DNA from: Octopus sinensis
Lineage: Eukaryota
DNA: 64,000 nt
Assembly (NCBI RefSeq): GCF_006345805.1
Contig: NC_042997.1
Coordinates: 171,864,001 to 171,928,000, forward strand
Direction: 5' to 3'
Position 1 is the first letter of the stretch. Each line of letters opens with the position of its first letter. Made by a program: the position numbers and the translations under genes. Below the pieces are notes generated by a model that searched no databases, had not been told where the DNA came from, and saw only the letters and a list, made by a program, of their open reading frames with translations. This document shows positions 5,401-63,655 of this stretch, piece after piece.

Positions 5401-7310
5401 CTCTCATCGCATCAAAGGTGAACATGACTCTGTTAACTTCTTAGATGTTACAATGGAGATTAAAAAGGGAATTTATAAACCCTTTAATAAACCCAATGAA
5501 AACATAAAATATAAACATATTGGAAGTAATCATCCCATATCAGTAACAAATTCACTTATACATAACATTTCATAAAGAATAAACAAACTGTCAGCCAATG
5601 AAAATATTTTCAAACTTAATGACAACTACTATAACTTGGCACTTAGGAAAGTAGGGTATAATGATAAAATTAAGTTTAATAAGTCAAATATTGAATCGGA
5701 TTTAAATAGTAATTTTAATATTGCAGACTTAAAATCTAGTACTATAAACAAATCTACTTAGAACAAATGTAGTAATGGAGATTTAAAGTAGTCAAGTTGA
5801 TAAAATAACCAGAGTAGGTGATTTTAGTAGCGAGAATAAAAAAGGTGAACAATTATGTTTATAACAAAAGGAAAAATCATAAGATTGTTGATAACCAGGT
5901 TAAAAATTCTTGCACAGCTAATGGAAATGTGGATGTAGTATTCTCTAATAAAATCTCAGATTCTTTTAATATAAAATTGCCTAAAAGATAAAAGTAAAAT
6001 AAATGGATCAAAATCAGAGAATACTTACTCCTTTGAAATCAGATATAAAGGTCAAAATTATGATGTTAACTCGAAGAATACTTTATGGTTAATCGTTCCA
6101 TTTGGAAAACAGGTCAATTACAATTTTTCCAAATTGTTTAATATAGCAATTGAAAAGTATTTTCCAAGAAACCACAGATATTACAAAATTTTTAATTAGC
6201 ACAAGATTAGATTAGGTTGTTGGCTTAGTTGTAAGGTTGCACAAATTATAGCAACACTTAATATTAAGATAATATCGAAATTACAAAAAAGTGATTACAA
6301 TCAGAATAGCATAATAGCGTCAAACAATAAAGAAACTCAAATAGAAGGAAGCACTAAAAAAATTAAATGTTGTAGAAAGGGAAACAACCCAATTTAACAT
6401 AAATAATAATGTCAAATTGAATAAAAGTTCAGCTAGAACTAGAACAAAGATAATCTTATCTAAAGGAGTAAATAGTAATAGAGAACTTGATGGAAATGAA
6501 TCTAATTCTACAATGAATGATCAAGTTGAAACTAAATCTGATAGAAATATAAAAGGCTATCTTTGCAATTGTTCTAAATGGGAATCCTGTTATTCGAAAA
6601 ATATGTGTAAAACTAAAAATGTAATATATGGATGTATAGTTATATCTGAGGGTAAGGAATTCATTTACATCAGTGGGACATCATTAATTTTCAAGAAGAG
6701 ACTTGTAAATCATTTTTTAGTTCATTTAAGGACAAAAATAAAAGGTTCCAAATGAGTCTTATCAAATTAATCTGGTCTTTCAAGGATAGTAACTATATGA
6801 TTTTCCGTGAGTTAATTTGTACAACAAAACCATACAGACCTGGAACCAATAGTTGTGACCTATGTTTGGAAGAATTTTACAAGATTTTCACATCCAAGGG
6901 TAATGTAATAAATTCTAGACAGGACCAAGCATTGAGATGCTTGCACATGAGCAAATTTACATTTTCCAAATATGAGTAATTACTATTCAAACTATACAAG
7001 GTTTTGAGATGATGGACTGAAAATGATTATCCTATAAGAACTTGAAATAGAGATTGTTTGCATCTGACTTAACAGACAACTCTACATTACACAACACTAA
7101 GTGTATAAAAGAAAATCATTAAACGGCCATACTAAGGGATATCAAGTTAAGACCCTGAAGAGACTGCACCATTTTATAGTAGTGTTGCAATTGGAATGAT
7201 TACTAATCAGTGCAATTGAAACGTGTTGGTCTTAATAGACAGTATATAATTATAGAATTAAAGGTAATGCTATTGCTACTTCAGAGTAATTCTTATTTTT
7301 AATATTGTCT
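5400..7310 (+). mobile_element. Penelope-like element (PLE), 5'-truncated: RT thumb, linker, GIY-YIG endonuclease, pLTR
   Basis: VNFLDV...YKPFNKPN...SNHP (PLE RT C-terminus). CNCSKWESC...C...VIYGC...FIYISG...RL..H and CDLCLEE...INSR...CLH (PLE GIY-YIG with CCHH motif). Multiple stops and frameshifts. Ends at (TA)n. Confidence 0.9.
7147..7235 (+). ncRNA. Type I hammerhead ribozyme in the Penelope pLTR (CpG-decayed)
   Basis: Stem I TTAAGACC/GGTCTTAA (8 bp), CTGAAGA at 7155-7161, stem II GACTGCAC/GTGCAATT, GAAA at 7218-7221, then CGTGTT. Confidence 0.85.
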
Positions 7311-7385
7311 ATATATATATATACACATGCACACATATATATGTATGTATGTATAAAAGTATACACATAAAAGTATATACATTAC

Positions 7386-7546
7386 AGAAGTGGCTGTGTG
7401 GTAAGTAGCTTGCTTACCAACCACATGGTACCAGGTTAAGCCTCACTGTGTGGCACCTTGGGCAAGTTTCTTCTAGTATAGTCTCAGGCCAATCAAAGCC
7501 TTGTGAGTGGAGTTGGTAGATGGAAACTGGAAGAAGCCCATCGTAA

Positions 7547-7604
<58 letters not shown>

Positions 7605-7823
7605 ATATATATGTTTGTGTGTCCGTGTTTGTCCCCCCAACATCACTTGACAACTGATGCTGGCGTGTTTATGTCCCCGTAACTTAGCAGTTCGGCAAAC
7701 GAGGCTGATAGAATAAGTACTAGGCTTACAAAGAATAAGCTCTGGGGTCAATTTGCTCGACTAAAGGCAGTGCTCCAGCATGGCTGCAGTCAAATGACTG
7801 AAACAGGTAAAAGAGTAAAAGAA
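7386..7823 (+). mobile_element. SINE family A
   Basis: Homologous over its full length to 901-1312, with an expanded internal (TA)n. Confidence 0.9.
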
Positions 7824-8289
7824 TCTTGTGTATCTTATCATCATCATAATTTTAACATTCACTTTTACATGCTCATATAGGTTGGATAGTTTTTGTCGAG
7901 GCACATTTGAAACAGAATTGAGGAAATATTAATAACCACCTAGCCTACAAACTCTGCCTCCATACAACATGAAGGTTAGAATTTCTAAATATTAATCAAA
8001 TTGCTCATAGAACAATGAACCTCTAGAGAGAAACATATAGAACAACAATCTTTGCACCTACTCACATCCTTCTGTGAACACCAAAACACAAGATAACAAA
8101 TTGCCATGCTAACAACACCTTGACATAGCAGACTAATAACCCTCACCTTCCAAATACAAACAAGAAATATCCTAAATAAAAACAAGTAAAGACTCTGACT
8201 AGTCAAAACATATTTACATTCTTTTGTAGATCCTTAAAAATTCCATTACAAATATGTTAAGACACCCAATTACTAGGTTTTTAAAAACT

Positions 8290-55229: not shown

Positions 55230-56277
55230 TTCACAGGTATAATAAATAAAACCACAGTAAGCTACAGTTTTCTATATTTTTTTCTAAATTTCAAAATTTA
55301 AAACAGTTCTTTTTTGTTTAACTTTCCCTGTGAAGAGCACCAATACTTTTTATTTGATCTCCAGTGTGTCATAAAGTTAAAATAAAAACAACCAAAGATC
55401 AGAAGGCAGTAGCATAACTAATAACAGTTGTATTATAAATTCTAAAACAATAAAGCAGCAATTGAAAAACAGTCTTGTATAAGGTATAATGTTGTTAAGT
55501 ATTGACTGTAGAAATATTAGCTTATTTTGGAAGAGCCATATTAAAACTGATAGACAAACTGCTTGTTTCTTACCATAAGGTAAATTTTCTGTAACCCTTT
55601 AGTGTTCAGATTAATTTGTCAAATATAATGCTTATCTGTTCACATTAATTTTGATTTATTCAGGTTCAAGTAGGGTGTTCGCAATATTTGCTTGTAACTT
55701 TGTTAATTTTCTACATACAGATTTGAAATTTTGTAAATGGGTGCTTATATGCCAGTGGTTTATAGTTACATAATTTTAACTGATCATTCTGATTAAATTT
55801 GACTTTTATGGACAGGTAAATTTAATTAAAAGGTGTAAAAACAATAACATTATGAATAAACACTAAAATTCATATTCTTAATACATCTTACCTGTTTAAT
55901 TTGTAACTAAAATTATCCCAGATGTCAATTGCCAACAATTTTACATTTTACAAGATGAGGTACATTAATTTGAATTAATAAAAATACAGGTGTAATCAGT
56001 ACAAGATTTTAGTCTTTCTCTATATTTTATTCAAACATTTTCATTGAAAATAATGTACAAAACTCTTTTACTAGTCAATATAGCATTGGCTGTGTACTCT
56101 TATACAATTTAATGAATTCATTTACGTAACAGAATGCAACTAATAAAAGAAAGCTCATTAACAGGTGAGACAAAGGTGAATACAGGTGTGTAACATACTG
56201 AAAATTAATATGTATTTCTCACTTTCACATATTATTTATAATAAAATGAAAAGGAATATATGATAAAATAATATCTT

Positions 56278-56572
56278 TTTCTTTTATCTTTTATCTTTTA
56301 CTTGTTTCAGTCATTTGACTGCGGCCATGCTGGAGCACTGCCTTTTAGTCGAGCAAATCGACCCTGGGGCTTATTCTTTGTAAGCCCAGTACTTATTCTA
56401 TCGGTCTCTTTTGCCGAACCGCTAAGTGACGGGGATGTAAACACACCAGGGGAACAAACACAGACACACAAACACATACACACACATATATATATATACA
56501 TATATACGACAGGCTTCTTTCAGTTTCCGTCTACCAAATCCAGTCACAAGGCATTGGTCGGCCCGGGGCTAT
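56278..56572 (-). mobile_element. SINE family A, 5'-truncated
   Basis: Reverse-complement homology. Confidence 0.88.
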
Positions 56573-56584
56573 ATATAGTTATAA

Positions 56585-58212
56585 AATAATATAGTTATGA
56601 CATATTTCTGCCATGAAACTACCCAAAGCACCCTTTACACAAAGGCACTTTGCAAAAAGAACACATATATGAAGTCTTAATCTGATATCCTTTTGCAGTT
56701 TTTCTTTTTTGCTGTGAACACAGTCTGCAAACTTTCTTCCATTTATCTTTTCGACTTTATGAAAGTCAATATTTTCTCTGTTGACATCCACCTCAGTTAA
56801 TTTTGCTTTTCTCCCAGTTCTGTGCTTTCTAGAAGAAAAAGCCCTCACATAAGTGAGATGTAATGTCAACTTGAAAGTTCAAATGGTTGTAGTCCTTTGG
56901 TGGCTTTTTACATATACAATATATGAATTAACTATAGTTAAATTAACTAAAAACCGCAAAATGTACCTCTACCATTTCTTCCCAGGTTGACCGATATTGG
57001 TCAGATTTATCAACCCCACCCTTATATTTGTTACAACAAATATTCACTAGGGGTTTTCTCTAGGCACCAACACCAGGTTGTTCATTAGTAGACAGAAATA
57101 AAATTTGTCTTTTGTCTTTGAAAGCAGTAGCTAATAAATTTTCCTTTTGCATTTGTAAAATATCCCCTCTTTTTTTTAATTTTGTTTTCATTTCATGGGG
57201 TAAACCTTTACAGTTGCCCATAACAGTACTGCACATGTAAGTACTTACATGGGCAAGATTTTCTGCCAAAGCCATTGAAGAAAAAAATGGTCAAAATAGA
57301 GGTGTCAGTGCTGATGGTGAAATGGTTCAATAAGAGACCATACTACATCATGTCCTAATCCATGTGGTCTGTTTCCATTATATTTTCTACCTGTGTGAAC
57401 ATCGAAATTTACACAATATCCAGAGTCTGATTAGCAAACTTCTTATACCTTGATCCTCCATTTAGTGGGTTTGGCAGGCATGTACTGCCGAAAATGTACT
57501 CTGCCCTTATAGCCTATAATGGTTTCATCTACACTGAGATTTTTCCCAGGTAGATACACAGTTTTATAATTATTAAAGAGTAAATCAATTAAAGGGTGTA
57601 CTTTGTACAGGGGATCATAGTTTGGGTCATTTTCCTGGGGGCATTAGCAGAATCAAATGTAAATACTGAGATATTTTCGAATACCTCATCTTTGACATTA
57701 TACTTGAGATATGGATCACCATATCTTATATCAGGACTCCAGTAGTTCCACAGTCAAGGAAGCTGTTTAACACCAAACATAATATTGATTGTGAAAAACT
57801 CTCTCATTTCTGCAGTATAAGTTGGCTGCCTTAGTGGAACGTTTCTTCCACAAATAGAAATTACACGTTGTGCATATTTGTTTGTTTCCTCCATAACATT
57901 TTCAAAACAACTTTCCGGTAAAAGTAAAAATAGATAGTCCAATGGTCGAGCATCAGGAGGTAAATTGTGTTGTGGACCAGTGTTTTCTGGGAAATCAGGA
58001 ATAGTGATTGGTGTTGTAATCTTTGACCATCATGCCATGCTTACGATATCATTTTCATCACTTTTGTTTCCAAAATCTTCCTCGTCCAACGAATATTCGC
58101 TAATATTGATATCAGATTCATCCGAAGACAAAATACTCTTGTTTTCATTTATATTTTCTATATCATCAAGAGTAAAACCTTCAAAGTTGGAATCACTACC
58201 TGCTGACGCCAT
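56585..58212 (-). pseudogene. piggyBac transposase (PGBD-like), decayed
   Basis: Acidic N-terminus, PLDYLFLLLP...VMEETNKYA, LSVDETII..KGR..FRQYMPAKP.KW.IKV, LYFDHFFSS, ILFLST, DYN, Cys-rich C-terminus. Many stops and frameshifts. Confidence 0.9.
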
Positions 58213-58264
58213 TTCATTAAAAACTAAGGTACAGACTTCTCTTCAAACATTGAAAAAAACCCAT

Positions 58265-60326
58265 TCTTTTAAGGGGCCGACAAAGAGGTGACAACACAAA
58301 CACATGTGGGGACACATAACACAAATAAATAAAATTTCAAAATAAAATTAAAATTATGATAATATGAATGAATAACGAAAATGAAAAAAATGGAAACGCA
58401 CTGCTTGCCCCACCTCAAGCAGCATCACTTACTTCCTTTTATCTTGGGAGTCCTTTTAACATGTTCAAGTCGAGTTTTTCTAATAGTTCCTTATAACCAA
58501 TAGGATCTTTTCGGTTTGAACGGCAGTTTTTTCTAGCTGTGTCATATGAAATTGTCACCCATAATTATGACCCTAGTACTGATCTATTGCATTTCAATCT
58601 GTTTTAGGGTTAGGGTTAGAGTTAGGGTTAGGGTGAGGGAAGGGTATCTTTTTTCCTTCAGAAATGTAAATAAACCCAATCTGTTTCTTAAATGAGGGAC
58701 ATATTCATACGGCACAGAATGTTTTCACCTCAATAGACGTCATTGATTGGTTGAAATTGCAGAAATTGAAAAAAAACCCGACAAATATCTTACAAACAAT
58801 AGAATTTTCTCAATAAAGCCAAGAGAAAAAGATGTTTTATAAACACATTCTACCAGTATACGAAGTTTAAAAGTGTTTAGCGGCGTGGAAATTATTTTTA
58901 AAAAACTGACGTTCAAACCGAAAAGATCCAACTAATATTGTCCATTATCCTTTACAAGTCTGCATAAATTTTCCACTATGTATAACCTTCTTTACATTTC
59001 TTTACTTTTTCCATTTGTTTCTCTGGAAGTAGAACCCACGTGTGCCACCCTAAGGTGTTGGATATCCTTCAACATTCACAAATTTCCCTGTTTTCCATTC
59101 TGTTAGCTTACAAATCAGTTCCTTGTTCTCCCTATCCATCAAAAAATATACATAACTAGATTCACAGGGAGGGGAGTTTTGTATATTTTGTTGTGTTTTC
59201 TTTCTCTTTTTATTTGGACTGTGTAGGATGGAAATTGGTGGGTTTGGTGTCTGTAGGGAGAGAGCGAATCTGAGATGGTGTGGGTGGGGTGGATATGGCT
59301 TGGGGTTCCACTTCACAGAGTTCCTTCTTCCTCTTCTTCTTCCTCTGCTACTGTCCACATTTCTTCCTTTTTCTTTTCTTCCTCCTGTAAATCCTCTTGC
59401 TTATTCTCTAACTCCTTTTCAGCTTTTTCCAGATTTTGCTTCTGTAGAGGACAGTGTACTCTAATGTGGCCAAAAAGGCCACCTTTAAAACAACGAGGGG
59501 TTCTGCCCTCTACCCACACTTTCAAAATCATGTCACTGATAGTAACCGTCTCTGCCAATCTTTCCAGGGTTTCTACCTTGGCCTGTACAATGAGGTCTAG
59601 CATTTTTCCTTTCCACATCGACCCTTCCGTTTCTGTGACCTGGAGGATGGCCACTTTCTAGGAGGACAGCTGCCGCAACCCATGCCACATCTATATCTGA
59701 AGGGACACCCTCCACCCTAATCTTGGAAGTTCTTCTACCAAGATAAGTAGGTAGAAGGACCTCTTTGTCTTCACTGTTTACGGCTTTCCTCTTTGCTGTT
59801 CCCTCTGTTCTGAATTGTACAACGACCGTCCCGTACCTGCTTCCTCTTGCCAAAAACTCTACATCCCTCCATACCATGCACAACGCATTCTCAGTTATTT
59901 GTTCTTCCATGTGTTCGATCTCTTATCCCTCCATCGAGTAGACTTTGTATCCTATGGTTTTCTTAACCATGTCATCCATTACTTTCTGGGGTCGGGACAA
60001 CTTTACATCACCACCCACTCTGCTTGATATCTTTTGATATCTTTTCATACTTGACATGTCTATCTCCTTCTTCTTCACTTCTGTCACTTCTGCAAAACTT
60101 TTCCTTTCCAAGCACTTGTCCGTCCTGTCCACAGCCATAACTAGTTCCTCCTCCGAAGAAGACAACTCCAAACCATTCAGGTCTGAATAACACATCCTTC
60201 CACAAGCCATTGCTATCTCTCATTCATATGGAGAGAAAGCACAATCAAAAAGCCGCTGCAGAGCAGCAACAAATTTTCACTTCCAATACTTACAACCAAC
60301 AGCATCAAAAGAGCATGGAGACACAT
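58265..60326 (-). mobile_element. ORF1-only retroposon unit B (Tx1/L1-like ORF1, no RT), interrupted by a MITE
   Basis: RRM-like LLPTYLGRRTSKIRVEGVP and knuckle RCFKGGLFGHIRVHCP. Its 5' UTR and 3' UTR (GAGGTGGGGC, TGTCCCCACATG, GCCCCTT) align with unit A. Confidence 0.75.
58503..58929. mobile_element. MITE with 29-bp TIRs and internal telomere-like (TTAGGG)n
   Basis: GGATCTTTTCGGTTTGAACGGCAGTTTTT / AAAAACTGACGTTCAAACCGAAAAGATCC (1 mismatch). TTAGGG units at ~58605-58635. Confidence 0.8.
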
Positions 60327-60346
60327 AAACGTTGAAAAAAACCATT

Positions 60347-62059
60347 GATTTTTTATTACCCACAAGGGGCGAACACAGACGGGACAATACATAACATGTG
60401 GGGACATATAACAAAAAAAACATATAACAAAAAACATGTGGGGACATAAAACAATAAAAAAAAATCAATGTAGAGAATATGGGATGATAATGAAAATGAG
60501 AAAAATGCAATGAAACTACCCGGCCCCACCTCTTAGCAATTCCATTTCTGCCTTTTAACAGCTCTTATACCTTGAACCTTCTAAACTATCTTCATCATGT
60601 TCTTCCAACAATTTTTCATTTGCTAAAAGGTCTAGTAGTTTGTTCCAATCAAGTTCCACTTCCCACCAATCATATCCACTTTCATGCCTTGCCAACCTCA
60701 CCTTTTGTTCCTCTGTGGTTACCACACATTGGTGCCACCTCTTAACATTGTCATACCCCTCTGTTTCCACTTCTTTATACTCTTCCCATGTCATTACCGC
60801 CTTATATAATTCCTCATTTGAATCATCACACATTATTACAATACATTTTTTCCTTTTCTGCTTGGCTGGAGGGAGCTTGACGGTTTTTGTGTGTACTTGT
60901 TTCCTTTTCCTTTTTTTTTTGTGTTGGAGAGGAATGTGTAGGAGGGGAATGTCTGTGGGGGGAGTAGATGTGTGTAGGGGTGTGTGTCTTGGGGTTTAGA
61001 GTTCGAAACACTTGCGTTCTTTCTCTTTCTTCCAGCGACTTTTTCCCACTTGTTCTCCATTGCTACTATTTCCTCCTCCTTTTTGGTTTCTTCCACTTTT
61101 CTGGAACTCTCCAACCTCTCTTCCTTTTTCTCCTTCATATTCTTTAGTTGCTTCTCCTCTGCTTTTTTGGTCTGTGAAGGGCAGCCCACTCTAATGTGGT
61201 TCATTTAGGCCACATTTAAAGTATCTGGGGACTCTGCTCTCCACCCTGACCATCATTATCACATCATCCATAATTATTGACTCTGTAATATTTTCCAGAG
61301 TCTTGGTTGATCCTTGAACAATCAGGTTCAGTGTTTGTCGCTTCCATATCATGCTTTCCTTTTTCGTGGCCTGGAGAACCACCTATGTTGTCCCCATTTC
61401 CAAGAAGGGCAGCGTCTGCTATCCAGACCACATCAGTCTCTAGCAGAATTCCTTCTATGCTGATTCTTGTTGTTTTTAGTCCTCGGTAAGTGGGCAGAAG
61501 CACCACTTCCTCACTCTTGATGAATGTCGCTGCTGGCTTCCTTGCTGTTGCCACATCCTCTACTACTCCAAACATCAAACCTCTTGCGAGGTACATGATA
61601 TGACTCCATATCAATCTCAGAGCCTTTTCCACCTGGTCCGTAGTCACAATGTCAATTTTTCAATTACTCATCGAAAAGGTTCGGTACTTTATTGTCCTTT
61701 CCTTACGTGTCTTTTGGGGTGGGGGGACAGCTTCACCTCAAAACCATCCCGACTTACTAAATCTTTATACCTTCCAAATTTTCCATTATCCATTTCTCCT
61801 GGTATTTTGCCATGTCGGCAAAATTCCTCTTCTCCTTCATCAATTGATCATCCATCTTCAGGACTGCCTCCAACAATTCCTCTTCCAACTACGATATGTC
61901 TGAGAAGCTATAGTCTTCAACACACATTTTTTTTACTAAAGCTATCTCTCCTCTCACGAGAAAAGAAAGCACAAACAAACAAACCGCTGCAAAGCAGCAC
62001 AACACGTTCAAATACTATAGAAAAAAACACCAGTACAAAAAGCAAAGTATAAAATATAC
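60347..62059 (-). mobile_element. ORF1-only retroposon unit A
   Basis: LLPTYRGLKTTRISIEGI, RYFKCGLN.HIRVGCP, K/E-rich coil, C-terminal domain, 3' UTR and tail GCCCCTTGTGGGTAATAAAAAA. No RT. Confidence 0.78.
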
Positions 62060-62869
62060 AAACGTTGAAAAATCCATGTGGTCTAAACAATTTCACAGTA
62101 TTTATACTTGAATAATGGCAGGAAAGGCTTCATCTTGCATTATCTCAAAGCTACGAGAATTCAATTACATGATTTGTTTATTTTTTTAATAATTTCGTAG
62201 AGCAGTCTGATACGGCCGGATTTGGCCAGTTTGAACAAATACAGGGGAATTAATTTTGGCTGGTTTGAACACTTATCCTGTAACCTTCTTGTTAGGTTTA
62301 TAGGCTTGAAAGTGAAAATCTTCCAATGTATACTATATTTGATGGCATAAAATAAAATTAAATAGAAGTTAACCTCAGTGGAATTTGAACGCAAAGCACT
62401 GAGGTTGGAACAAATACCACAAAGCATTTTATTCAATACTCTGATGACTCTGCCGGGGAGAATAATTTAACGCGCATACCTACAAACAAACATACATATG
62501 TTTTATCAATATCGTATTTGTTTTTATTTTTAACAGACTAAACTTATATGGCTTTGTTAAGAATTCCTTGCACTCTTACAAGTGGCTACTGGAAGCTGAA
62601 AATGTGGTATTGCAAAGAATGTACTGATAATGAGAGAAAGCATTCTAGCTTAGATTAATAGGTTTTGACAGAAATGACAAACAAGCGTGAAAATCCACTT
62701 AAAGAGAAACATTAAAAAGTAAAAAAACTTTTACTATTTTGCAAGAAATTATATCAACAGCAGCAACAGCAGCAGTGGCAGCAGCAAACAACAATATAAT
62801 ACATGCTAGTAAGAGAGCTTTGCACAAATGTTTGACTATTAAGAGTAGCAAATAACTCTCTCTCTCTCT

Positions 62870-63178
62870 CTCTTCCTCTTAAGAGCTGTTCTTCACTCCT
62901 GCTCCAGAGCGTCGGCTGCGGGGTCATTCCAAAAAGCTCTACCTGCGACGATTTCATCTCAATCGAAGGAGAGGAGCTTTCTCCATCCGGGTTGCGGATC
63001 CGTGGAACAAGCTGCCAGACGAGATGGTGAAGATGCCGACGACCGCTTTGTTCAAAGCCTCCCTTGACCTCAAGTGGCCTGAACTCTTTACATGAACACC
63101 ACCCTGTACTTAACTCCATGTCCCCCTACATGGCCTTGCTATTTGCTTTTGAGCCAAATTAACTAACTAACTAACTAA
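62870..63178 (+). mobile_element. CR1-clade LINE 3' end, young
   Basis: RLRGHSKKLYLRRFHLNRRRGAFSIRVADPWNKLPDEMV...FKASLD, CpG-rich, (TAAC)n tail. Confidence 0.9.
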
Positions 63179-63282
63179 CACTTTCAAGAATACTCCACCA
63201 TCTTAGAAAAGAATTCATTGGATAATCTGGTTCTGGATTCCCAACCTATGGATAAAATATGAGTTGGTCACAACTTGGAATA

Positions 63283-63655
63283 ATCATCATCATTGTTCGA
63301 CCATGGTCGAGACAATGGAATTTACCATGCTACGCCAGACTTCACGGTCCATCATAGCATTACGGAGGTCCTGTTGCTGGATGCCCGTATCCCTGGAGAT
63401 TACATCAGGGTAGGAGAGTGTGTGCCCTCTGGTATTGCGAGTAAATGGCTTCCAGAGGAGAAGAGTAGAAATTGCCTCGTTTTCAGCTCTACAACAATGT
63501 CCAGCAAACTGGACTCTCCTACCTTTCACAAGAGATGACACAGGTGGTAGTTTCCCATATATTTGCATTTTGGTTGGATGACGCTTCCACGAGAGATTTT
63601 GAGCTCTCATAAGGAGGATTAATAATGGTTTCAAATTTTTGCACAAGGCCAGCAA
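63283..63655 (-). mobile_element. RTE-like LINE 3' end (family distinct from 36928-39206)
   Basis: RRVQFAGHCCR...LLWKP...YPDVISRDTG...MMDREVWR, followed by a (TGA)n tail. Confidence 0.82.

Follow-up and report, generated by a model that had tools for sequence, protein, structure and literature searches.

Two head-to-tail, ORF1-only LINE derivatives of Octopus sinensis probably inserted independently at one site in a piggyBac leader

R1, R2, SART, and TRAS are long interspersed nuclear elements (LINEs) specific for ribosomal DNA or telomeres that rely on cotranscription with their target and on 3' read-through, and R2 uses a restriction-like endonuclease. Here, we compare with these and other described systems an array found in a 64,000-nucleotide (nt) stretch of Octopus sinensis DNA (the window) at positions 171864001-171928000 of contig C1, in which two LINE-derived units, A and B, lie inside a piggyBac DNA transposon. 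Like R1, R2, SART, and TRAS, the octopus units appear to insert at a fixed site and in a fixed orientation, to lack a promoter, and to restore a copy of the target at the junction, but their target is the promoter-proximal leader of a transposon rather than a host gene or a telomere. In Xenopus laevis, the Tx1 (Tx1L) LINE sits in Tx1D, a nonautonomous piggyBac, and the Tx1 clade includes Keno, Kibi, Koshi, and Mutsu, with some lineages targeting small nuclear RNA (snRNA) genes or microsatellites (PMC4494074). In crocodilians, Tx1-Mar LINEs and SINEU, which are short interspersed nuclear elements (SINEs), are inserted in Mariner-N4_AMi, and transcription of SINEU from upstream host promoters has been suggested (Kojima 2015, PMC4494074). 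HAL1 is a derivative of mammalian L1 that encodes only the first open reading frame (ORF), ORF1 (Smit 1999; Bao and Jurka 2010; PMC5753468). Among cephalopods, L1-Tx1 is the sole L1-type class in a table of recently active LINEs of Octopus vulgaris, with a mean insertion of ~5.4 kb (2,288,644 bp in 421 insertions) (PMC13282606); L1-Tx1 is also among the ancient coleoid repeats (PMC8967140), and a study of octopus LINEs covers only RTE and Dong elements (PMC9115989). Target-specific Tx1-type nesting in DNA transposons and mammalian ORF1-only half-LINEs are known separately, and the octopus family combines both. In the literature searched, we came across no report of target-specific elements that encode ORF1 only or of this family from a cephalopod, in agreement with a preliminary description of the window, made from its sequence, whose author knew of no account from molluscs.

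In the reading that we consider quite probable, the array consists of two independent, old insertions of diverged, LINE-derived subfamilies without reverse transcriptase (RT) at a defined piggyBac site. On the minus strand, the order is piggyBac 5' region, motif, unit A, motif, unit B, motif, piggyBac leader, and transposase ORF. One piggyBac spans ~55595-62280, and both units lie inside it, 203 bp in from its 5' end; a conserved TATAAATA lies on one side of them and the transposase ATG on the other. The features, including untranslated regions (UTRs), RNA recognition motif (RRM)-like regions, and a miniature inverted-repeat transposable element (MITE), are as follows.

62078-62280, minus strand: piggyBac 5' region before the insertion, with a degenerate 5' terminus (TTA followed by CAGGATAAGTGTTCAAACC) at ~62280
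62099-62106, minus strand: conserved TATAAATA, its first T 29 nt before the A of ATGG
62060-62077, minus strand: junction motif copy 1, ATGGATTTTTCAACGTTT
60346-62059, minus strand: unit A, ORF1-only LINE derivative (LINE ORF1 match, E = 6e-14), with 80-84% identical relatives in other piggyBac copies
Within 60346-62059, minus strand: unit A 5' UTR, which holds a GCTGC..GCAGC hairpin word
61264-61596, minus strand: unit A RRM-like region
61181-61223, minus strand: unit A degenerate CCHC knuckle, then linkers
60555-60833, minus strand: unit A C-terminal domain, then 3' UTR
~60346-60410, minus strand: unit A conserved tail
60327-60345, minus strand: junction motif copy 2, ATGGTTTTTTTCAACGTTT
58265-60326, minus strand: unit B, ORF1-only LINE derivative (match to the ORF1 of LINE L085, E = 2e-22), with closest relatives (77-78%) at other loci
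~59533-59910, minus strand: unit B RRM-like region, preceded by the 5' UTR
59451-59492, minus strand: unit B degenerate CCHC knuckle, then K/E-rich and P-rich linkers
Within 58265-60326, minus strand: unit B 3' part, with the MITE-split C-terminal domain, 3' UTR, and tail
58503-58929, unstranded: MITE nested in unit B, 427 bp, with 30-bp inverted ends that are 97% complementary
58245-58264, minus strand: junction motif copy 3, ATGGGTTTTTTTCAATGTTT
58213-58244, minus strand: piggyBac leader 3' of the insertion site, GAAGAGAAGTCTGTACCTTAG..., joined directly to the motif where the site is empty
55612-58212, minus strand: decayed piggyBac transposase region, with its ATG at 58212 and many stops and frameshifts
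55595-55611, plus strand: piggyBac 3' terminus, TAA followed by CCCTTTAGTGTTCAGAT, an inverted copy of the family 5' end, TTAA followed by CCCTTTAGTGTTCAAAC

The preliminary description had reported two diverged paralogues head to tail, with a junction motif before, between, and after them, and all of these are where it had placed them. The three motif copies follow the minus-strand pattern ATGGnTTTTTTCAAYGTTT, for which 0.05 chance occurrences are expected in the window. Units A and B are ~65-70% identical (~30-35% diverged), with a mean column identity of 70% in a MAFFT alignment that is lowest in the 3' third. The described length of ~1.7 kb holds for unit A, but unit B now measures 2.06 kb, solely owing to the MITE that splits its C-terminal domain. 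Likewise, the single ORF1-like frame ascribed to each unit is supported by ORF1 homology, but both units are dead, with stops and frameshifts that cut each frame into pieces of 60 to 125 amino acids. The CCHC knuckle is present in both, but one cysteine is mutated in each (YFKC..H..C in A and CFKG..H..C in B). As for the tail, it is a conserved 3' segment of ~60 nt that ends ..GCCCCTTGTGGGTAATAAAAAATCA, not poly(A), and an AATAAA lies 6 to 9 nt before the unit end. Finally, the units had been placed beside a piggyBac ORF; the piggyBac is real, but the units lie within it rather than merely next to it.

The host element belongs, by its TTAA target, its CCC...GGG-type inverted termini, and its predicted DDE_Tnp_1_7 transposase, to the piggyBac superfamily. 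The window transposase region is 82-87% identical to ~40 genomic copies, and the better-preserved copy L051 matches DDE_Tnp_1_7 (E = 2e-82) and zf-Tnp_2. Aligned 5' regions of other genomic copies give the family 5' end as TTAA followed by CCCTTTAGTGTTCAAACC, and TTAA followed by CCCTTTAGTGTTCAAAC was found at the 5' ends of many copies.

To read the site elsewhere, the genome (2.72 Gb in 13,516 contigs) was searched with a query made up of the piggyBac part and the end of unit B. The 5' junction was read in 29 other piggyBac copies, 24 of which keep the region, and ~18 of the 24 carry the motif once, between the window's two flanks. This agrees with the expectation of the preliminary description that empty copies have a single motif. 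The empty site reads ...TATAAATActgtgaaattgtttagaccac / ATGGTTTTTTTCAACGTTT / GAAGAGAAGTCTGTACC..., that is, upstream window flank, motif, and downstream window flank, with the core ...caagTATAAATActgtgaaattgtttagaccac ATGGTTTTTTTCAACGTTT GAAGAGAAGTCTGTACCTTAG.... Because the empty copies join both window flanks across one motif, the units are an insertion into the piggyBac leader. Furthermore, the youngest, nearly identical copies (L050, L051, L053, and L059) are all empty, and therefore the consensus piggyBac is empty. These four copies also argue against the idea that the units are original piggyBac cargo, a captured gene, which empty copies lost by deletion between the direct 19-bp repeats. 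A segment that lies between direct repeats can be deleted precisely, but the units have LINE ORF1 homology and a LINE 3' tail, and they have duplications of their own in mariner, SINE, and other contexts, which leaves the cargo reading very improbable.

A-like or B-like units were found at the same position and in the same orientation, always the transposase sense, in at least 8 other piggyBac copies. All of the A-like matches found with unit A (80-84%; L002, L004, L005/L020, L021/L024/L039, and L027) are at this piggyBac position, as are two of the three closest B-like copies with readable flanks, so the flanks are not random. The filled sites are the following.

Window: A then B
C3:117.09M (L002/L044): B' then A'
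C3:101.96M (L004): A alone
C20:11.38M (L005): A with an internal deletion
C11:36.74M (L039): rearranged A
C20:21.0M (L057): B-like, alone or first
C3:126.8M (L032): B-like
C1:77.26M (L107): B-like, alone or first

The filled loci thus differ in content and order at one site, which fits the proposed reinsertion at a duplicated target. An exact-pattern genome search for the tail-plus-motif junction matched only the two best-preserved, already known loci, and it was dropped as a census because the copies are too decayed.

Next, we weighed two ways in which few insertions could have produced these loci. Local tandem duplication of one unit by unequal crossing-over would account for the head-to-tail arrangement with its repeated junction. 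However, A and B are much farther apart (~30-35%) than the surrounding piggyBac is from its relatives (~13-15%, which is also the difference among the piggyBac copies). In addition, the closest relatives of each unit, at 80-84% identity for A and 77-78% for B, are found elsewhere in the genome and are much nearer to it than its partner is. This explanation has next to no probability. The second possibility is that one or a few ancestral insertions were spread as a composite by piggyBac transposition, segmental duplication, or gene conversion. Both piggyBac termini are kept, so that mobilization in trans is possible; the filled copies are all confined to a single clade of the piggyBac tree, with 13 rows; and L005 and L027 are one segmental duplication, because they have flanks in common beyond the TTAA. 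Against this, both the subfamily present and the order vary between loci (A alone, A followed by B, B' followed by A', or only a B-like unit). Furthermore, filled and empty copies are mixed within a star-like clade of a maximum-likelihood tree computed from the piggyBac parts. Moreover, A-like copies diverge from one another (16-20%) slightly more than their piggyBac hosts do, and the same behavior is seen at three other kinds of repeat. We therefore consider spread of a composite improbable. The varied content, the interspersed tree, and the closer relatives elsewhere together suggest that A and B are independent insertions, with local duplication excluded and spread of a single insertion unlikely, and the pattern fits repeated insertion into one sequence.

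Two loci with related units lie outside this setting. The B-like copy L106 (G000:C4:76326700-76326940) is outside piggyBac, and the sequence before it, GGAAATTTCTTCGAACATTTG, is similar to the piggyBac motif; this copy may have missed its usual target and entered a look-alike site. At L003:1150-3100 (G000:C14:28611827-28616344), an A-like unit stands behind only 20 nt of piggyBac upstream sequence, beyond which is unrelated DNA resembling a splice donor (cag/gtaagt). This unit is without a tail and has a local duplication of ~60 nt, and either retrotransposition of a read-through transcript or rearrangement may have produced it. Because the locus is rearranged, L003 was counted neither for nor against repeated insertion.

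The preliminary description had proposed that the autonomous partner would be found through the shared tail, and it was. The final ~75 nt of the unit recur at many genomic places (83-90% identity), and the core ..TTGTCCCnTCTnTGTTnGCCCCTTGTGGGnAATAA.. is kept in units, LINEs, and a SINE. Two tail matches led to a region of contig C18 in which three tandem units follow a 5'-truncated, RT-bearing LINE; other LINEs near this array have an ORF1 of the same family as the units. One candidate partner in the C18 region, LINE#1, was rejected, as it has a different tail and is only ~65% identical. A search with the ORF2 C terminus then gave tens of thousands of candidate places, many with an uninterrupted 1,132-amino-acid frame. 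Locus L085 is a complete 5.15-kb LINE with an ORF1 of ~335 amino acids, an intact ORF2 of 1,132 amino acids, and a tail as in the units. Its ORF2 matches Exo_endo_phos (2.8e-14), RVT_1 (1e-30), and zf-RVT (1.7e-9), and the best solved relative of its RT is human L1 ORF2p (E = 1e-11; R2, 1e-4). By these predicted domains, an APE endonuclease, an RT, and a C-terminal zinc motif, L085 is an L1-group non-long terminal repeat retrotransposon. Among named relatives of the partner LINE, the best comes from Argonauta hians, and the names of ORF2 homologues in a large protein collection ("hypothetical" and "exonuclease III") gave no clade assignment. The unit ORF of the intact relative L007 is 38% identical to the L085 ORF1 over 235 amino acids (E = 1e-51), and the ORF1 fragments of units A and B match it as well (E values above). 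Judged by this homology, the units are ORF1-only offshoots of a LINE family that has abundant copies in this genome, part of them intact.

Two further features of the LINEs were seen in passing. Upstream of the tail core (L085-L104 compared with the units), LINEs read CTGA-CCCCACA-TCAG and units read ATGT-CCCC-ACAT, so that a small hairpin with a C-rich loop seems to be kept with different stems in the two. At G000:C9:76606933-76623892, four LINE ORF2 ends are spaced by ~3573-3578 bp, with a fifth 5243 bp farther on, which by its regular spacing is a putative tandem array of 5'-truncated autonomous LINEs.

We then examined what the units encode. Each unit encodes one protein, an ORF1 with two RRM-like modules and a CCHC knuckle that is fused to a C-terminal domain of ~90 amino acids. 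The intact relative L007 has a 294-amino-acid ORF with a zinc knuckle; in the intact relatives, the knuckle reads CFKCGQKGHIRANC and matches Pfam zf-CCHC (E = 8e-6). The RRM-like segment of the preliminary description is upheld by structure but not by sequence. No Pfam RRM match was found in the intact unit relative; however, an AlphaFold2 model of an intact relative, built from a ten-sequence alignment, has two beta-alpha-beta-beta-alpha-beta modules (core predicted local distance difference test [pLDDT], 75-84), and its best PDB matches by Foldseek are tandem-RRM proteins (IMP3 RRM12, E = 9e-5). Thus, the unit ORF1 is predicted, with moderate model confidence, to have an RRM-like fold followed by a CCHC knuckle. 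The sole protein relatives of the unit ORF come from Octopus bimaculoides.

The C-terminal domain, which had been noted as common to both units, is present in all of the unit subfamilies and absent from the LINEs. Its pattern is ..NEEL..W...K.V.T.GYDN...WH.CV...Q....GY..WE.D.DW..LP...YE.LLEE.G.D.LEGS.YK. It has no Pfam match and no homologue among 1.84 billion representative proteins, and an AlphaFold2 model from a six-sequence alignment reached a pLDDT of 43. The ratio of nonsynonymous to synonymous substitution rates (dN/dS) is 0.24-0.34 between unit subfamilies, with dS saturated, and ~1.85, on few changes, between two A copies. Such a contrast is usually left when active lineages are under selection and their inserted copies then decay neutrally, and by these rates the C-terminal domain evolved under purifying selection.

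More than 25 copies in at least 5 diverged subfamilies measure ~1.45-2.0 kb between homology boundaries (~1.7 kb for A), and in none of them, A and B included, were an ORF2, an endonuclease, or an RT found. The ORF2-less state is therefore not due to deletions peculiar to the window locus. Because there is no ORF2 anywhere, the C-terminal domain is kept in every subfamily, and dN/dS is 0.24-0.34, the units are one long-lived nonautonomous lineage and not repeated accidental deletions.

This combination is HAL1-like in architecture. As in HAL1, the units are nonautonomous, keep ORF1 and the 3' end, have lost ORF2, and were amplified as a family; their ORF1 is homologous to that of a LINE in the same genome, and their 3' end is shared with that partner. 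HAL1, however, derives from mammalian L1, has several origins, and is not described as site specific in the source cited for it, whereas the octopus units are target specific and have an additional C-terminal domain whose presence in every subfamily points to one origin and a long life. Neither the mammalian L1 origin nor the ORF1 of HAL1 proper (coiled coil, RRM, and C-terminal domain) was found, and the likeness is architectural only.

Other subfamilies of the family use other repeats. In the leader of a mariner family, the motif CTTATTCTTAGTGCAAGT is present once in 18 of 19 other mariner copies that have the anchor word, with the empty-site reading ..cttgcTATAAAAGcaggtagtaattttaccttgtc CTTATTCTTAGTGCAAGT TTTGAAGAGTGCAGTTCG.., and the remaining copy, L072, has a unit tail at the site. 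The same motif occurs five times in the C18 tandem array, which includes the RT-bearing copy; every junction of this array is YCTTATTCTTAGTRYAAGT, and the array ends before a mariner transposase (SETMAR, 5e-22; Mos1, 3e-20). Subfamily D lies in the head of a SINE with a 16-nt duplication, AGAATCGTTAGCACGC, in six of six copies (layout, GGCGGCGAGCTGGC AGAATCGTTAGCACGC unit AGAATCGTTAGCACGC CGGGCGAAATGC..). A fourth repeat is the target of subfamily E, whose copies share both flanks. Ten young autonomous LINEs fall into three groups by flank: six have the 3' flank ACATGGAGGAAAGCACCTTCGAAAAG, two have a second flank in common, and the other two have a third; several are preceded by another tail. 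Given the mariner, SINE, and fourth-repeat targets and the shared LINE flanks, fixed targets and tandem arrays are a property of the whole family, autonomous members included. Among the unit subfamilies, only A and B are piggyBac specific; the proposal of a piggyBac-targeting family therefore stands for these two subfamilies but not for the family as a whole, which uses other repeats too.

Two observations belong to these targets. The abundant SINE (L012, L013, L018, L022, and others; for example, L013:1200-1410) starts with GGCGGCGAGCTGGCAGAAACGTTAGCACGCCGGGCGAAATGC and ends with the LINE tail (..CCCTTGTGGGTAGTAAAGAAATA), and, besides being the subfamily D target, it probably depends on the same LINE, which would then have a third kind of dependant. 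At G000:C18 (minus strand of 25309400-25329700, positions 6086-8155), two inverted 754-bp arms, 99% identical and 563 bp apart, immediately precede the truncated LINE of the mariner array; they are probably a young foldback element or a transposon with long inverted ends.

The targeting can be set against the described Tx1 systems. The octopus family resembles Tx1 and Tx1D in having an L1-group LINE with APE, RT, and a C-terminal zinc motif and a CCHC-bearing ORF1, in its fixed site and orientation in a piggyBac-type repeat, and, as in the wider Tx1 clade, in the use of different repeat targets by related lineages. It differs in that the window units are without ORF2, the target is the leader of a transposase-coding piggyBac, and the host is a cephalopod. 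As with Tx1-Mar and SINEU, autonomous LINEs and their dependants prefer one mariner site and form tandem or nested arrangements. SINEU elements, however, are short noncoding SINEs with snRNA heads, many of them antisense to mariner, whereas the octopus units are protein coding, 1.7 kb long, and inserted in the sense orientation ~30 nt after a TATA box. The preliminary description's view of nonautonomous units with Tx1-like, sequence-specific behavior is borne out at fixed sites in piggyBac, mariner, the SINE, and the fourth repeat. The partner LINE may itself be a member of the Tx1 clade, for which the place of L1-Tx1 as the one L1-type class in the O. vulgaris table, with a mean insertion of ~5.4 kb against 5.15 kb for L085, gives indirect support. 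By its targeting and the L1-group architecture of its partner, the family is Tx1-like in behavior and HAL1-like in architecture, and what it adds to these known kinds is the selected orphan domain and the promoter-proximal targets in other transposons.

These results suggest how the array could have formed. The LINE ORF2 protein, with its APE endonuclease, RT, and zf-RVT motif, would bind the shared tail in trans and copy the unit RNA into the genome by target-primed reverse transcription. Units A and B land at one site in the piggyBac 5' leader in the sense orientation, for which an ORF2 partner with endonuclease specificity for the piggyBac site is presumed. A bottom-strand nick at ..CCAT/GTGG.. 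and a top-strand nick ~19 nt farther downstream, immediately 5' of GAAGAG, would duplicate ATGGTTTTTTTCAACGTTT. Each insertion would regenerate the target on both sides, so that a second insertion into either copy would produce a head-to-tail array with n+1 motifs. The inserted unit would be transcribed from the host piggyBac promoter and end at its own AATAAA, and the insertion would silence that piggyBac copy; the layout in the mariner family is the same. In piggyBac, mariner, and the SINE, one short sequence flanks the insert on either side and is present singly where the site is empty, as expected if the three window motifs are successive target-site duplications, as first proposed. In the SINE, the 16-nt repeat begins at position 15 and not at the first base; because it starts inside the SINE, it favors a true target-site duplication there.

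Where the site lies may also matter. The piggyBac motif starts 30 nt after the first T of TATAAATA, which together with 21 nt precedes the motif, and the mariner motif starts 31 nt after the first T of TATAAAAG, which together with 22 nt precedes it. From standard TATA spacing, the motif start is the predicted transcription start in both transposons. In addition, the same 9-mer, TTTGAAGAG, lies directly 3' of the piggyBac and mariner motifs; by our estimate, the chance of a shared 9-mer at a matching offset is ~2e-5. The main autonomous-LINE target has TTCGAAAAG at the same distance, and these matches at one offset suggest that a protein recognizes DNA just 3' of the duplicated stretch. There is about an even chance that lineages with a site behind a transposon promoter were favored because each new copy is transcribed; we put it no higher because the SINE target does not fit. 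TATA-like boxes (TATAAAG and TATAAATA) also occur 25-40 nt before the 5' junctions of several autonomous LINE copies and one E-type unit (L085:1230-1300, L105, L101, and L025:1400-1500), L085 and L105 having upstream host sequence in common, and they suggest that promoter-proximal landing is general in the family.

An alternative to target choice by a partner endonuclease is RNA-guided homing, in which ORF2 protein acting in trans nicks loosely and the site is set by unit RNA ends that anneal to piggyBac copies. Transcripts would start in the host leader and read through a weak 3' end into the next motif, so that the RNA would have target sequence at both ends for annealing in priming and 5' joining, and the three motifs would not be classical target-site duplications. 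The units have no endonuclease of their own, yet their subfamilies differ in target; the AATAAA lies close to a unit end without poly(A), so that cleavage 10-30 nt on would fall in the next motif; and the motif coincides with the predicted host transcription start in two unrelated hosts. The extra 20 nt of piggyBac upstream sequence at L003, in a context other than piggyBac, would also be explained. However, the SINE duplication resembles the product of staggered nicks and not a leader, the RT-bearing LINE at the mariner site in the units' own array makes a matched autonomous partner plausible, autonomous LINEs share flanks themselves, and TTTGAAGAG and TTCGAAAAG recur at one offset. On balance, RNA-guided homing is unlikely. 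We give about the same low weight to a broader form, in which a lineage with neither RT nor endonuclease chooses its own sites through its RNA ends or the protein formed by ORF1 and the C-terminal domain instead of a borrowed endonuclease, its subfamilies being specialized on the first 20-30 transcribed nt of piggyBac, mariner, and the SINE and its copies capturing the promoter and switching off the host. If true, such self-chosen homing would make the units a parasite of parasites with programmable homing.

Several points weigh against two independent insertions by targeted reverse transcription. The ~30 piggyBac places read are a sample of at least 464 candidates. None of the filled loci that were read has an RT-bearing copy at the piggyBac site, the sampled young autonomous LINEs use targets other than this site, and neither L106 nor the partial A-like copy L003 lies within a complete piggyBac. 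The decayed piggyBac copies fit either a 19-bp duplication or a target present once plus an element-borne leader or 3' read-through, so that, for piggyBac itself, the reading of three target-site duplications is matched equally well by the latter. The motif copies at one locus are not identical; a comparison of their T runs, in which both L002 copies share a TTTCTT variant, is suggestive only. The transcription start is predicted from TATA spacing alone, and the SINE target is an RNA polymerase III unit, so that promoter borrowing cannot explain every target.

Given these caveats, the family offers several lines of use. Units without an endonuclease but with different fixed targets are a natural experiment on whether an endonuclease, RNA ends, or an ORF1-type protein sets the target, and the many partner-LINE copies with an intact 1,132-amino-acid ORF2 mean that these questions may be open to experiment in octopus. 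The site at the predicted transcription start of two unrelated DNA transposons suggests lineage-level selection for a borrowed promoter, with host silencing as a side effect. For annotation, the composites explain the CCHC "genes" apparently carried by some octopus piggyBac and mariner copies.

Finally, other repeats were noted in and beside the window array. The MITE in unit B has the inverted ends GGATCTTTTCGGTTTGAACGGCAGTTTTTT and an internal telomere-like (CCCTAA)n run, and a second copy, 83% identical, is present in L058. Just beyond the piggyBac 5' end, at 62900-63610 on the minus strand, are the C-terminal end of an unrelated LINE-like ORF (..DREVWRSMVNSIVSTMVEQ, followed by a stop) and a further ORF fragment, both of them other decayed retroelements.

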